Origin: Podarcis filfolensis
Taxonomy: Eukaryota
Strand: one strand, 5' to 3'
Length of the DNA: 64,000 nt
NCBI GenBank assembly: GCA_964270895.1
Contig: OZ185450.1
Under the pieces are notes generated by a model, which saw nothing but the letters and a program-made list of their open reading frames with translations, made no database searches and was not told the origin of the DNA. Positions 9,261-62,536 of the stretch are shown piece after piece. Positions within the stretch are counted from its first letter, which is position 1; every line of letters starts with the position of its first letter. A program made the translations under genes and the position numbers.

Positions 9261-11399
9261 TAAATATACTAATTTAGCTTTCGAAGTACAGGAAGTAAAT
9301 GCAAATATTTTCTTTCCTTATGCGGCTTTCATCAAGCACCTCCAAGTAAAAGGAAATGGCTCCCTCCTGCTCCCTGGACCCCATGGACAGCTGTGCAGGG
9401 AAACATTGCTAGCTGCTGCGTTAGCACACTCCCTTGTCTTCTTTGCTGCTGGGCTTTTGGGGTGGCAGATGCCACTACATGAGCTTCCCAGCAAGTGTGC
9501 TGCTGCTGCTTACCCAGAGGAGGAAGGTGGCGGGAGGTCAGCATGGTGCACATGCACCAGTTAGACAGATTCTGCTGGTGTGTTTGCACCACACTGACCT
9601 CCCCACTCTCTTCCCCCTGTAAGTAAGCAACAGTGGCCCACCTGCTGGGAAGCTAGAATAGCAACTCTGCCCCACCCAGCTAGCTCCTGTGAAATGGAGT
9701 TCCTTCTAGAAGAGAGAACTTGCAGTGACAGCCAGATGGGAGATCAATCCCCTTTCCCAGACTCTTATTACAACTATTGTGTGCAGAAGCTTTTTTCTTT
9801 TGCTTGTCCTGAACATGCTGCCTAATGCATAAACATCCTGTCTGAGGCTAGTGTTCAGAAAATTCTGCTATGACCTGACCTGACCACAATTCTTTCAGCT
9901 TCTTACGCCCCTCTGTATATGGGTTGTGTATTACTGAGAAGCGGCCTTTTGAGAACCTGAAGACTCCATCTGTAAGCTATGCAGCCTTCCTATTGCAGAA
10001 TGGCTGCTATTAAACTAGATTCGTATTTATATACACACTCCCTCTATTGACCTCTGCACCGGGAGTTCATAAAAAACACAGTAGCAGTCTTGTAAAAAAA
10101 GAAAATAAAAGAAAAGCACTTTCCTTCTCAATTGTGAAGGGAAACAGTCCCCTTTTTAAAAAAAGAAAAAGAAAAAAGGTTCAGTATTTGACCATGACTC
10201 TGCTCTTCCCAACCTCCAAATTGTTCAGGCCCGTCTGCTTTTGACCCAGATTATATAAAATCTTCTTTATGAAGCAGACTGCATTGCTGTATTTTGGATT
10301 TCTCCTCTTGGTACCAACTGATTCTCAGAATGCATCGGGGGGGGGGGGCTTTGTAGTCCTTATCCAGGAGGCAAGGGCAGGACAGGCACACACAGCAGGC
10401 TCTCAAAAAGCTGAAACACACAAAGTGATTCCAGCATATCTTCCTCCGTAGAAAGCGCACACTGCCTTGGTCTAGCACAGGCTGGCTAATGAGAGGGGGA
10501 GATGGAAAATAGGATTGAATAGATCAGGAATGAGTCATAAGACTGAGCAGCAAAACAGTCATAGAGGCTTGGAGCTGAGCTACATGATCTCAAGGACCAT
10601 GAAATGCAGTTCCTGATGGGGTGTACTGCTGAAAGTGAAAGACTGTATGTTAGAAAGCATCTCGCTGACAGCAATTCCCTGTATATTAGCTGCTCTTTTT
10701 CCTCAAGGTGTTGAATTTCCATATGCAAGGCACTGCTTTTTTTCAACACTGGTCATCAAACACCCGCTTGCTATCCAAATCCTCCAAGAGATTCATTGTG
10801 TGATTTTTGTTGATCATATGAGATATTTGCAAAACAGAATACGGAGTGATTTGCTTTTCAAAGTTCCTGCTTCTGCTGTAATGGGGCTTTCCCCTGGAAC
10901 TTGTAGATGAGATAAGTGAAGAACTCCAGTGTTCCCAGGAGGCACCTTGCTTTGTACATGAAAGGAGAAAACAAGGGATATCTGAATCACTCCATAAAGG
11001 AGGTTTCAACTTTCCTGTATCCACAATTTGATGCAAAACAGGAGGTACAGAAAGCAAGGTCTGGGACTTATTATATATATATATATATATATATATCAAG
11101 AACTGAATGATTAACAACACAGAATCTCATACACAGCACAACAGGAAAAAAGCTGACATTAAAATCTTCATCATAACAACTTATACAAGTTAACCTTACT
11201 AGTAATAAGGCTGAACACAGTCCAAAGGTCTGGTGGGGTGAATACTTTCACTTTGCTAAGGACGACATTTCAGGGGAATGGCAAACAATTTTCATTTTGG
11301 AATTCCATAATTATGTTCCATGTCCCACACAAACTGTGCTAGATACATGTGAATCCTACCGGCAGAACTCAATAATACCAATTGAAATATTCCTTTGCC

Positions 11400-36064: not shown

Positions 36065-37290
36065 TAAATTGTAGAACTAGAAAGGATCCCAAGGGTCATC
36101 TACAACTTCCTGTAATACAGGAATCTCAACTAAAGCATCCCTTACAGATAGCTATCCAACATCTTCTTACAAACCTCCACTGAAGGAGAATCCACCACCT
36201 CCCAAGGGAGTCCATTTCACTGCCAAACAGCTCTTACTGTCAAAAAGTTATTCCTATTGTTTAGTTGCAATCACCTTTATTGTTATTTGAATCCATTGGC
36301 TTTGGTTCTATCCTCCAGAGAAGGAGTAACCAAATATTCCAGAGAAGCAGTAACCAAGCTTGCTCCATCTTCCATGTGACAACCCCTTAGATATTTGAAA
36401 ATGACTACAGTGGTACCTCGAGTTAGAAACGCCTCAGGTTACAAACGCTTCAGGTTGCAAACTCCGCTAACCCTGAAGAGTTACCTCGAGTTGAGAACTT
36501 TGCCCCCGGATGAGAACGGAAATTATGTGCCGGCGGCGCAGCGGCAGCAAGAGGCCCCATTAGCGAAAGCATGCCTCTAGTTAAGAACAGTTTCATGTTA
36601 AGAACGGACCTCCAGAATGAATTAAGTTCGTAACTGGAGGTACCACTGTATTATATTTCCTCTCAGTCTTCTCTTTGCCAGGCTAAACATTCCCAGTTCC
36701 CTCAACTGTTCCTCATAAGGCTTGGTTTCCAGATCCTTGAAAATCTTGGTTGCCCTTCTCTGCACATGTTCTAGCTTGTCAATAGCCTTCTTAAATGGTG
36801 GTGCCCAGAACTGGACACAGTATCCCAAGTTTGGCCTGACCAAGACAAAATGAAGCAATACTATTATGTCCATTGAGTTGGACACTATACTTCTGTTGAT
36901 GCAGCCTAGAATAGCATGAACTCTTTTTTTGCTGCTGCATCACACTGTTGACTCATGTTGAGCTTGTAATCTTTAAAAACCCTAGATCCTTTCCACATGT
37001 ACCAAAGGCAATCCAGGTGCCCCCAATCTTGCTTTGGTGCAGATGGTTATTCCTCCCTAATTGCAGAACCTGACATATGTCTCTATTGAAATTCATTTTG
37101 TTAGTTTGGGCCCAGTTCTCCAATCAGTTAAGGTCATCTTGAATCCCGATTCTGTCTTCTTTGGCATTAGTTACCCCTCCCAGTTTGGTGTCATTTGCAA
37201 ATCTGATGAGCTTCCTATCAATTCCTCTACCCAAGCCTTTTATGAAGGTGTTGAACAACGATGGTCCAAGAACAGGACCCTGGTGACTCC
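36065..37290 (-). mobile_element. CR1 LINE, 5'-truncated (RT domain to 3' end)
   Basis: Translations QGPVLGPSLFNTFI...IRFANDTKLGG (RT; FADD-like motif) and LVRPNLGYCVQFWAP...VQRRATK...LRELGMFSLAKRRLRG match CR1 ORF2. Interrupted by a MITE at 36408-36648. Confidence 0.95.
36408..36648. mobile_element. Tc1/mariner (Tigger-like) MITE inserted in CR1
   Basis: TA TSD; TIRs CAGTGGTACCTC / GAGGTACCACTG. Confidence 0.92.
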
Positions 37291-49375: not shown

Positions 49376-49492
49376 TAAGTTGAGAAGGGAAGCAAAATAT
49401 AGGCAGAGTTAACTTCACATTCCTACATATACATTAAGATCTTAAATCGCTTTGTGTGGCTCCAGCAGGGGCCATCACCAAAGAGTCTTCCC

Positions 49493-50042
49493 CAGCGGCG
49501 TAGCATGGGTTGTCAGCACCCAGGGCAAGGCAAGTAATTTGCGCCCCCTAACCCCTAACCTGCCACCGCTGCCAGCTTCTTCTTGCTGCTGCCTGGGCTG
49601 GGGTATTTACGGTAAGGTAGCCACGGCGGCGGCGGCGGGTCCGTGTCAGGTGATCTGAGGCGAGTTGCCGCTGGTGCTGCTGCCCAAACGACGCCGCTTG
49701 CCCGGAGGAGGAGGAGGAGGGCAGAGAGGCGAGGAAAATGCAACATGGCCCAGCAGCTGCAGCAGCAGCGGCGGCAGGGGGGGCGGCGGCTGTGAGGAGG
49801 GGCTGCCTGGCATGCCCTCTGCGGTCCTGACGCGCGGGGACCGCGGCGAGCGCTGAGAGCCACTGCCTGCCGGACGCCTTCAGCCCGGACGCGCGCACAG
49901 CTCATCGGTTCCGCGAGACATGGGGCTCTGCTACAGCCTGCGCTCGAGGCTCTTCGGCGACTCAGGAGGCGGCGAGCGCGCCCCCCCAGATGTTGCGCCC
50001 GGTGCGGCCGGCCCCCCCTGCACCCCCCACGCTACGCCACTG
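49493..50042. mobile_element. Non-autonomous hAT (Tip100-like) element carrying captured host DNA (Pack-hAT)
   Basis: TIRs CAGCGGCGTAGCATGGG / CCCACGCTACGCCACTG (15 of 17 match). Perfect 8-bp TSD GTCTTCCC at 49485-49492 and 50043-50050. Subterminal TTGCGCCC near both ends. CpG-dense interior within CpG-poor flanks. Confidence 0.88.
49920..49985 (+). pseudogene. GNAL: Captured 5' fragment of G-protein alpha-olf long isoform (XLGolf) exon 1
   Basis: MGLCYSLRSRLFG versus human GNAL long-isoform N-terminus MGLCYSLRPLLFG (11 of 13, from recall). Strong Kozak context GAGACATGG. The rest of exon 1 (..[21 protein letters not shown]) is absent; the frame runs into the transposon end. Confidence 0.75.
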
Positions 50043-50234
50043 GTCTTCCCTGCTGCTTACCCTATTTATTGTCTTTTGAGCACTAGGGGAAGAGAACTTT
50101 ATACTTCATTAAGTTTTTTACGTGCAGTTTTAATCTTCCTGACTGTTCTTTGCTGCTTTTATGTTAGCTTATCGTATTTACATGTTATTTTATTCATTGT
50201 GTGTGTGTGGGGGGGTGGATTATAAACTGCCCTG

Positions 50235-52096: not shown

Positions 52097-52455
52097 GAGG
52101 ATAGGGTGGCGCTGTGGGTAAAACCTCAGCGCCTAGGACTTGCCGATCGCATGGTCGGCGGTTCGAATCCCCGCAGCGGGGTGCGCTCCCGTCGTTCGGT
52201 CCCAGTGCCTGCCAACCTAGCAGTTCGAAAGCACCTCCGGGTGCAAGTAGATAAATAGGTACCGCTTTATAGCGGGAAGGTAAACGGCGTTCCGTGTGCT
52301 GTGCTGGCTCGCCAGATGCAGTTTGTCACGCTGGCCACATGACCCGGAAGTGTCTGCGGACAGCGCTGGCTCCTGGCCTATAGAGTGAGATGAGCGCACA
52401 ACCCTAGAGTCTGGCAAGACTGGCCCGTACGGGCAGGGGTACCTTTACCTTTACC
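52097..52455 (+). mobile_element. Sauria SINE, second subfamily
   Basis: Same architecture as the others with diagnostic differences (AAAACCTCAGCGCC, GATCGCATGG, GGGCAGGGGTACCTTT tail). Confidence 0.9.
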
Positions 52456-60951: not shown

Positions 60952-62259
60952 TACCTCTATTTTTCTCTCTCTCTCTTACATACAAACCAGCTGCTTCAAT
61001 CTCACCTAGGAGCATGGGGTGGGGGGGAATGTTGACCCTTTTCATACATTGACAACCTGCTATCAATGGCAGCCTCCAAATAAATTGACTTCCCCTTTGT
61101 AAACCAGCCATAGAAAGGGTTAAAAGGTGGGGAAAGAGTTAGCCCTTTCCCCCCTTCCACCAACATCCTGATCTGTACAGTTGTGGCTGCTTCCCCCATC
61201 CCACCCCAAAGAGATGTGCCTGGTCCCAAGGACAGGACTGAAAGTCGCCTCTAGGTTGACCCCGAGAATATCTTGCTGCAAATGCACTCCGTAGTCTACT
61301 TCTGTGCTTCTGATTAATCCAAGCCCTCTTCTACTGAAAACAGCAGCTACTTTATCTTAAACAGAATGCTTGGGAATTGACTGCCAGTCCTCTTCATCAG
61401 GCCCAGGTGTCCTCTAATGTATGTGACAGGCTCTCTTACACAGCACATTTCCCTAAGTGAACCACAGTGTAGGCATCATTTGGGCTCCTGGCCTTATTAG
61501 AGGAGCTTTCTTGCTACACCACTGTGCAGCGGAGACCCCAGAGCACCACACTTGTCTGTATTTTCTACTTGAATTTGCTGCTGTGCTGTCGTGTCATATT
61601 TTTGGCTTGTCTGTGTTGCCTTAGATCTCAGTGCCTTTCAGACTTCGTCTGCACACACTATTCTCATTCCAGACACAGACAGTAGCGTGGCCTCTGCTGC
61701 TGCAAAGGGCGCTCCTGGTTTTGCTCCTGATGCCATTGGACCATCACGGGTCAAAGTGCAGGAATTCAAATAACACCAACATTTGGAGTTCAGCACCTTA
61801 GCTATCATTTACTCGTGTGCAAGAAACACATGGGGGGTTGAGGGACAGAATGCACTACCAAAGATGACCACTAGCTTTGAAGTTTTAAAGAAGGTGCTCT
61901 AGTAAAACTCATACAGTAGATACGGGGAACCACTGGCCCTCCACATTGTTGCTGGAACACAATTCTCACCATCCTTAGTCCTTGATAGGAGCTGCATTTC
62001 AGCAGCATCTGGAGGGCCAAAAGCCCCACACACTTGTTACGGACGATAGGTCTGCCACTTGCTGCTTGTCATGGTAACTAAAGAACATCCATGCAAAATG
62101 GTGATGCACTCCATAATATCAGAAGCCAAGGACGAATGAGTGGCTGTTCACCTCTATCCTGTCATGCTGAGATAGAGGGTTGTATCCAATGCTAGTCCGA
62201 CTCATAGGCCCATTGAAAGCAATAGCAATTGTGCAACCTTTGTTGAGGTTCCTTTAATT

Positions 62260-62397
62260 CAGCCTTTCTCAACCTGTGTGTCCCCAGAAGTTGTTGAACT
62301 ACAACTCCCATCACCCCTAGCTAGCAAGGCCAGAGCTCAGGGATGATGGGAGTTGTAGTCCAACAATACCTGGGGACCCACAGGTTGAGAACCGCTG
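62260..62397. mobile_element. Short palindromic hAT MITE
   Basis: TIRs CAGCCTTTCTCAACCTG / CAGGTTGAGAACCGCTG; perfect TSD CTTTAATT. Confidence 0.92.
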
Positions 62398-62536
62398 CTT
62401 TAATTGCTGTTAAGGAAAATCTGGTGCACCTTATCTTGCACCTGCAGGTCTTGTAATTTGAAGGTTACTGACCTGGCAACCCGCCAAGTAGATCCCTGTG
62501 ATCTGACAACCAGCCAAGGATGTGGTCATTCTTGGG

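Follow-up and report, generated by a model that had tools for sequence, protein, structure and literature searches.

We analysed a 64,000-nucleotide stretch of lizard DNA from contig OZ185450.1 (assembly GCA_964270895.1), hereafter the window, and found that positions 49493-50042 are occupied by a 550-base non-autonomous hAT transposon, which consists of two short and unlike ends of ~59 and ~66 nucleotides (nt) around an interior of ~425 bp, the cargo, that is probably derived from the 5' region of the gene GNAL (Table 1). The two terminal inverted repeats (TIRs), CAGCGGCGTAGCATGGG and CCCACGCTACGCCACTG, are complementary at 15 of 17 positions, both mismatches being CpG-type transitions; they begin with CAG and finish with CTG, as is required of hAT elements, and are abutted on either side by the perfect 8-bp target-site duplication GTCTTCCC. 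Both the TIRs and the duplication had been placed here by an earlier reading of the sequence (the original prediction), and we find them at exactly these coordinates. The TIR pattern has only these two matches in the window, even when up to 3 mismatches are allowed, and neither a further copy of the ends or the cargo nor a match to an Rfam family was found in the window. We also scanned the window and 100 simulated windows for 17-nt TIR pairs with at most 2 mismatches that are abutted by a perfect 8-bp repeat. Two such structures are present in the real window, namely, the element itself and a 138-bp miniature inverted-repeat transposable element (MITE) at 62260-62397, versus none in the 100 simulated windows.

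Table 1. Features of the hAT element and its cargo, with positions in the window (ORF, open reading frame; UTR, untranslated region; TSD, target-site duplication; A1 and A2, alignments described in the text)
Feature	Positions	Strand	Evidence or remark
Target-site duplication, left copy, GTCTTCCC	49485-49492	.	Perfect direct repeat; recovered by TIR+TSD scan
Left TIR, CAGCGGCGTAGCATGGG	49493-49509	+	Repeat search; 17-mer pattern also at metagenome hAT MITE ends
Left transposon end, ~59 nt	49493-49551	+	Alignment A1 with the relatives' end adjoining the transposase C-terminus
Subterminal motif TTGCGCCC, left copy	49539-49546	+	Repeat listing; T..CGCC columns invariant in A1
Cargo, ~425 bp: putative 5'UTR/CpG island and start of the GNAL long-isoform first exon	49552-49976	+	Composition; same breakpoints in the Podarcis lilfordi copy
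ATG and 19 codons inside the cargo, MGLCYSLRSRLFGDSGGGE	49920-49976	+	G at -3 and +4; MGxCxS myristoylation/palmitoylation-type start
Full mechanical ORF, 101 codons and stop	49920-50225	+	Runs from cargo through right end and duplication into flank
Right transposon end, ~66 nt	49977-50042	+	Alignment A2 with the second, G-rich type of metagenome MITE end
Subterminal motif TTGCGCCC, right copy	49993-50000	+	Repeat listing
Right TIR, CCCACGCTACGCCACTG as read on the plus strand, CAGTGGCGTAGCGTGGG on the minus strand	50026-50042	-	Repeat search
Target-site duplication, right copy, GTCTTCCC	50043-50050	.	Perfect direct repeat; TIR+TSD scan

Relatives of the two ends were identified by searching JGI metagenome contigs for exact occurrences of the lizard TIR pattern, which gave more than 120 contigs among the matches listed, some chance matches being expected at that collection size. 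About 62 of the contigs among the matches listed are concentrated in a few samples and show similarity far beyond the 17-mer, and thus represent one MITE family, whose two unlike ends read CAGCGGCGTAGCGTGGGTTATCGGCGCCCGGGGCGGACTGCAATTTTGCCGCCCCC... and CAGTGGCGTAGCGAGGGGG..GGGGCGGACCGCCCCGGGCGGCAATCAGGAGGGGGCGGC..., respectively. Paired ends in these contigs bound elements of 49-1341 bp with perfect or 1-mismatch 8-bp duplications, and two of them (L069, 3207-4547, and L105, 546-1487) are internal-deletion derivatives with perfect duplications that encode a Dimer_Tnp_hAT domain (PF05699; 28.9 and 27.4 bits, respectively, at a Pfam gathering cutoff of 21.4 bits). The left end of the lizard element can be aligned over ~59 nt with L009, L041 and the family-A MITE ends through TTGCGCCCCCTAA (alignment A1), and its right end over ~66 nt with the second, G-rich end type through GGGGGGGCGCGC (alignment A2). 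A TTGC(C)GCCC motif is part of both alignments and is found a single time in either end of the lizard element, and the subterminal motif TTGCGCCC is probably bound by the transposase. Judged from these alignments, 49493-49551 and 49977-50042 are genuine hAT termini of a lineage that makes 8-bp duplications. The assignment to the hAT type in the original prediction is thereby borne out by the 8-bp duplication, the CAG...CTG termini and the homology of the ends to a family with PF05699-bearing deletion derivatives, and its estimate of ~65-bp ends was also right. In L105, the PF05699 remnant points to the type of end that the lizard element has on its left, and the GNAL-like ORF described below is therefore probably antisense to the ancestral direction of the transposase.

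A second copy of the whole element was found in Podarcis lilfordi, using as query an antisense ORF of 116 codons which is spurious and contained entirely in the cargo. This ORF has one protein match, P0003, an 80-residue 'uncharacterized protein, partial' of P. lilfordi (E-value 1.4e-22), and the locus of P0003 (OX395143.1:10116838-10137078, hereafter L133) contains the entire element at its positions 9878-10392, with both TIRs, both subterminal regions, the breakpoints between ends and cargo and the ATG as in the window. The flanks of this copy are unrelated to those in the window, and a different perfect 8-bp duplication, AGTACTGG, borders it on both sides. The two copies are identical in 460 of 480 aligned columns (95.8%), with five indels of about 3-33 bp, and the ends, with 4 substitutions in ~125 nt, have diverged to a similar degree as the cargo, with 16 in ~355 nt, which indicates that ends and cargo have shared their history since before the two copies separated. 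Because the breakpoints are identical while the flanks are unrelated and the perfect duplication is a different one, the composite is mobile: it has moved as a unit by cut-and-paste after the cargo was acquired, and has been inserted at no fewer than two, that is, at least two, unrelated sites. The window and L133 thus present one chimera at different loci with different duplications, which is what defines a multicopy Pack-hAT, and the two independent insertions imply past transposase activity.

Three further observations concern this second copy and its insertion site. The coding sequence annotated as P0003 (L133 10001-10241, plus strand) is the antisense ORF in the transposon cargo, and is probably an annotation artefact arising from the GC-rich insert. 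At about 10310-10360 of L133 (minus strand), the left subterminal region contains a tandem duplication of 33 bp (GGGCAAAGCAAGTAATTTGCGCCCCCTAACCC), by which the TTGCGCCC motif is doubled. Moreover, the sequence CCAAAGA(G) lies directly 5' of the duplication at both sites, in the window at 49473-49492 (CACCAAAGA|GTCTTCCC) and in L133 at 10393-10412 on the minus strand (CTCCAAAGAG|AGTACTGG), which could be due to chance, to a target preference or to insertion into related repeats.

The cargo differs from what is found inside related elements. It has a GC content of 0.70, 42 CpG dinucleotides and an observed/expected (o/e) CpG ratio of 0.83, and no CpG island in the window is stronger than the segment 49600-50040 (GC 0.71, CpG o/e 0.82-0.89, the o/e of the window as a whole being 0.25). 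It had been described as the only strong one; its rank is upheld, but a CpG-rich short interspersed nuclear element (SINE) at ~52100-52440 also exceeds the usual thresholds (GC 0.60, o/e 0.97). That SINE is tRNA-derived and presumably of the Sauria type, and shows that high CpG in this genome can merely mark a young insertion. The interior has no similarity to the interiors of the related elements, which amount to tens of bases or to transposase remnants, and on this comparison it appears foreign to the hAT ends, 'non-transposon' being meant in this relative sense. Between 42 and 68% of the sampled cargo 31-mers are present in the DNA contigs of ten coded organisms, from fourteen runs in all, which agrees with the suggestion from the P0003 match that the window belongs to a Podarcis or a near relative. 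When the shares of the runs are compared, one sample has two runs with conflicting cargo content, and thus the absence of the cargo from some contig sets is probably due to GC drop-out.

Inside the cargo, the ATG at 49920 begins MGLCYSLRSRLFGDSGGGERAPPDV..., and only 19-20 codons belong to the cargo, since from 49977 onward the frame reads the transposon end. The claim of a strong-context ATG whose frame enters the right transposon end is therefore confirmed, and so is the claim that the continuation of exon 1 to the G1-box region is absent, as neither the G-alpha P-loop (GAGESGKS/GAGESGKST) nor any other G-alpha motif was found in the six frames of the window. The N-terminal peptide reads MGLCYSLRSRLFG in the window copy and, in P. 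lilfordi, MGLCYSLRPRLFG, and the ORF start can be read further in the second copy as MGLCYSLRPRLFGDSGGGE, compared with MGLCYSLRSRLFGDSGGGE in the window. We compared the peptides with MGLCYSLRPLLFG, the presumed N-terminus of the long isoform of human GNAL. The identity to this presumed sequence is 11/13 in the window and 12/13 in the P. lilfordi copy. Eight consecutive N-terminal residues and LFG agree with it, and the less decayed copy agrees better. The MGxCxS lipidation pattern is typical of G-alpha subunits. A CpG-island cargo also fits GNAL as its source, since in mouse the transcripts of the long GNAL isoform originate from a distal CpG island (PMC7099774). Taking the peptide and these indirect observations together, we consider it probable that the cargo derives from the GNAL 5' region with the start of the first exon of the long isoform.

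The two copies have decayed very differently. Eleven of the 20 substitutions between them are CpG versus TpG/CpA differences, and the decayed form is on the window copy in 10 cases and on the L133 copy in one, a 10:1 ratio that reads as the signature of germline methylation at the window locus. The ORF is not kept past codon 20, as a 2-bp indel in a C-run shifts the frame of the L133 copy, which meets a stop after 41 codons, and no coding exon was recognised near the element within the window. Because of this loss of CpGs, the lack of a G-alpha domain and the unconserved ORF, the window copy looks like a passenger, and, judging from its sequence decay, it is most likely inert and decaying rather than a working promoter. 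The non-CpG divergence of ~2.4% between the copies points, under assumed rates, to an age in the region of 10 million years. The description of the element as young thus has to be tempered, as the copies differ by 4.2% and five indels and the window copy is already poorer by about 10 CpGs.

The best explanation of these results, and in our judgment a likely one, is a hAT Pack element that carries a captured fragment of the GNAL first exon and has been mobilised as a chimera. Under this explanation, a break or a stalled fork would have occurred in a resident MITE, upon which repair synthesis or replication would have switched template to the lizard's own GNAL 5' CpG island and then back. These switches would have left the breakpoints at ~49551/49552 and ~49976/49977, with the 5'UTR and the first 19-20 codons as cargo, and hAT transposase supplied in trans would then have excised and reinserted the chimera. 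Gap filling and FoSTeST have been proposed as routes for animal Pack-TIRs, the latter for the multicopy ones (PMC8277862). An exact 11-nt direct repeat, GCGGCGAGCGC, is present in the cargo at 49843-49853 and 49969-49979, the second copy ending at the breakpoint between cargo and right end; it could be a microhomology for template switching, or a chance occurrence in GC-rich DNA.

Several points weigh against a mobile, now inert chimera of GNAL origin. The GNAL origin depends on a 13-residue match to a presumed GNAL sequence, for which the original prediction is probably no independent evidence. Neither a parental GNAL locus nor a lizard GNAL protein was retrieved by exact-product look-ups or protein searches, and only two copies have been seen, possibly in different species. 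A transposase domain inside these termini is present in the metagenome relatives only (L069 and L105), and no autonomous partner was seen in a lizard, lizard genomes not having been searched by DNA. Finally, the RNA contigs of a single coded organism contain 24-32% of the sampled cargo 31-mers, which means that either the parent or one of the copies is transcribed, and the term 'inert' derives from decay and not from expression.

The main rival reading is that the interior is the native sequence of a lizard-specific non-autonomous hAT subfamily rather than a captured gene start, its resemblance to GNAL being coincidental or based on a mistaken reference sequence. In its favour, ends and interior occur together in both copies, the searches yielded no parent locus, the family already has a G/C-rich right end, so that a GC-rich inside would not be alien to it, and the peptide had no relative in sequence searches. 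As to these searches, exact-product look-ups returned no match for the sense ORF, two antisense ORFs or two neighbouring ORFs of the window; protein searches with the sense peptide found no relative among what they can see, the word-indexed search being confined to proteins of 0.55-1.75 times the query length and hence not reaching full-length GNAL; and the second sense frame through the right end, searched for the parent or for other cargos, had no protein match. The representative protein library is clustered at 50% identity, and GNAL is probably stood for there by a non-lizard sequence. Given this length range and this clustering, the empty peptide searches say nothing about GNAL. The sole above-threshold matches of the sense peptide are multi-stretch matches inside proteins of 1053 and 2140 residues, which we read as low-complexity, and in the literature nothing relevant to the N-terminal peptide was found. 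Against a native interior, none of the relatives has an interior like it, and the cargo resembles in composition the CpG-island first exons of vertebrates, with trinucleotide runs, a strong-context ATG and an MGxCxS start; the agreement of eight N-terminal residues and LFG with the presumed GNAL start, reaching 12/13 in the less decayed copy, would moreover be left to coincidence. We thus regard a native interior as unlikely.

Co-option is another reading, in which the CpG island carried at this locus would serve a host gene as an alternative promoter or first exon, or would act as an unmethylated regulatory island. Some animal Pack-TIRs do give rise to transcripts and to chimeras with host genes (PMC8277862). 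The CpG o/e is still 0.79 across the element, the RNA contig sets mentioned above contain cargo words, and the annotation of P. lilfordi puts a partial coding sequence on the other copy. However, another copy or the parent gene may be the source of those RNA words, the one-sided CpG decay is what is expected of germline-methylated DNA, and the ORF, unconserved past codon 20, enters the flank without a convincing splice donor and with no coding exon recognised nearby in the window, which makes co-option of the window copy quite improbable. Still further from the evidence is an in-place gap filling of a resident MITE, after which the chimera would never have moved. This is the origin of most single-copy animal Pack-TIRs (PMC8277862), and TIRs and a duplication alone prove only the transposition of the original MITE, but independent fillings cannot give a second copy with the same two breakpoints, unrelated flanks and a different perfect duplication; we therefore hold it to be very improbable. 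Segmental duplication of the two copies is contradicted by the same unrelated flanks and different duplications. Lastly, a real or mis-assembled first exon of the GNAL long isoform with fortuitous repeats would account for the CpG island, the strong-context ATG and the GNAL-like start, but it has practically no chance of being right, since the rest of exon 1 and all G-alpha motifs are missing, the frame enters hAT-end homology at ~49977, structures of TIRs plus duplication occur in 0/100 simulated windows, and the element is also present at L133 with another duplication. Mis-assembly as such is ruled out by the occurrence of the same element at L133 with other flanks and another duplication, and the statement of the original prediction that this is not the GNAL locus is supported by the second copy at an unrelated P. 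lilfordi site and by the absence of G-alpha motifs.

Duplication of gene fragments by transposons is well known in plants and was long held to be marginal in vertebrates. The view that it is only sparsely documented there did not hold for the present type of element, as Pack-hATs make up 208 of 370 animal Pack-TIRs (PMC8277862), and the novelty is less than had been assumed. These figures are from the survey by Tan et al. (2021) of 100 animal genomes, in which four Pack-TIRs were multicopy, multicopy Pack-TIRs tended to have GC-rich cargo, and the single lizard genome, anoCar2, had none (PMC8277862). A close analogue is hAT-N8_XT of Xenopus tropicalis, which carries 291 bp of the CAPSL 5'UTR and is found on three chromosomes (PMC8277862). 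Like the lizard element, it is non-autonomous, has short ends, carries 5'-gene cargo of a few hundred bp and has distinct 8-bp duplications at each locus; the lizard element differs in its lacertid host, in belonging to another hAT family, in a cargo that includes a start codon and 19-20 codons besides the UTR, and in that its parent is putative. The Pack-MULEs of rice and other plants likewise have transposon ends around captured gene fragments, a GC-rich 5' bias and amplification by transposition (PMC8277862). However, they are Mutator elements with 9-11-bp duplications and long TIRs, as opposed to a hAT element with 8-bp duplications and 17-nt TIRs, and they number thousands per genome, compared with two verified copies of one cargo here. 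The Helitrons of vespertilionid bats are also vertebrate DNA transposons that disperse the 5' ends of host genes, but they do so by rolling-circle read-through, without TIRs or a duplication and on a far larger scale (PMC4224331). The MITE family of the invertebrate-associated metagenome contigs (Ga0056131/Ga0056132/Ga0056123/Ga0209681/Ga0209788 and others) shares with the lizard element the 17-mer, the ~59/~66-nt ends, the TTGC(C)GCCC motif and the 8-bp duplications, whereas its members are MITEs of 165-260 bp or derivatives with transposase remnants and contain no CpG-island-like insert. We found no description of this hAT family in lacertids in the literature. The lizard element is thus a further multicopy Pack-hAT, an event of a type that is rare in animals but already described.

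A mobile hAT chimera with a putative CpG-rich gene start, a start codon and an N-terminus of the membrane-anchor type means that this route is open in squamates. Since such elements mimic promoters and first exons, and one copy has already been annotated as a partial protein in P. lilfordi, CpG-island calls and gene models in lizards deserve to be screened for flanking hAT ends. Tentatively, and with more doubt than belief, we raise the possibility that this lacertid hAT lineage habitually captures and scatters the CpG-island promoter and first-exon modules of many genes. If this were true, it would be an amniote counterpart of the rice Pack-MULEs, which would seed CpG islands, alternative first exons and N-terminal lipidation signals throughout the genome, and a family with many cargos would be a natural system for following the fate of relocated CpG islands, the two copies already differing sharply in CpG decay.

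The scan for the TIR also revealed other users of the same 17-mer. A second, unrelated family with an identical 17-nt TIR (next bases CGATTTGACTACGCATGC...) is present in L004, L024, L056, L059, L062, L076, L096, L097, L114 and L115; the element at 967-4224 of L062 has a 1-mismatch 8-bp duplication, and that at 3911-4669 of L076 encodes a hAT dimerisation domain. Since a second, unrelated family uses it, this TIR is common to a wider hAT clade in invertebrate-associated samples. Matches to the TIR in viral contigs lie inside phage genes and were rejected as chance. The smallest element, a 49-bp 'micro-MITE' at 1561-1609 of L079, consists of hardly more than two TIRs and has the perfect 8-bp duplication AAAAGTTC.

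Two further features of the window are unconnected with the element. The 138-bp hAT-type MITE at 62260-62397 (62252-62405 with its duplications) has the TIRs CAGCCTTTCTCAACCTG and CAGGTTGAGAACCGCTG and the perfect 8-bp duplication CTTTAATT, and we take its termini to resemble those of the SPIN ('space invader') hAT family of squamates. On the minus strand at 36625-36939, there is a stop-free segment with a reverse-transcriptase-like motif (…GYCVQFWAPPFKK…), which, judged by eye, suggests a fragment of a CR1/L2-type long interspersed nuclear element (LINE).

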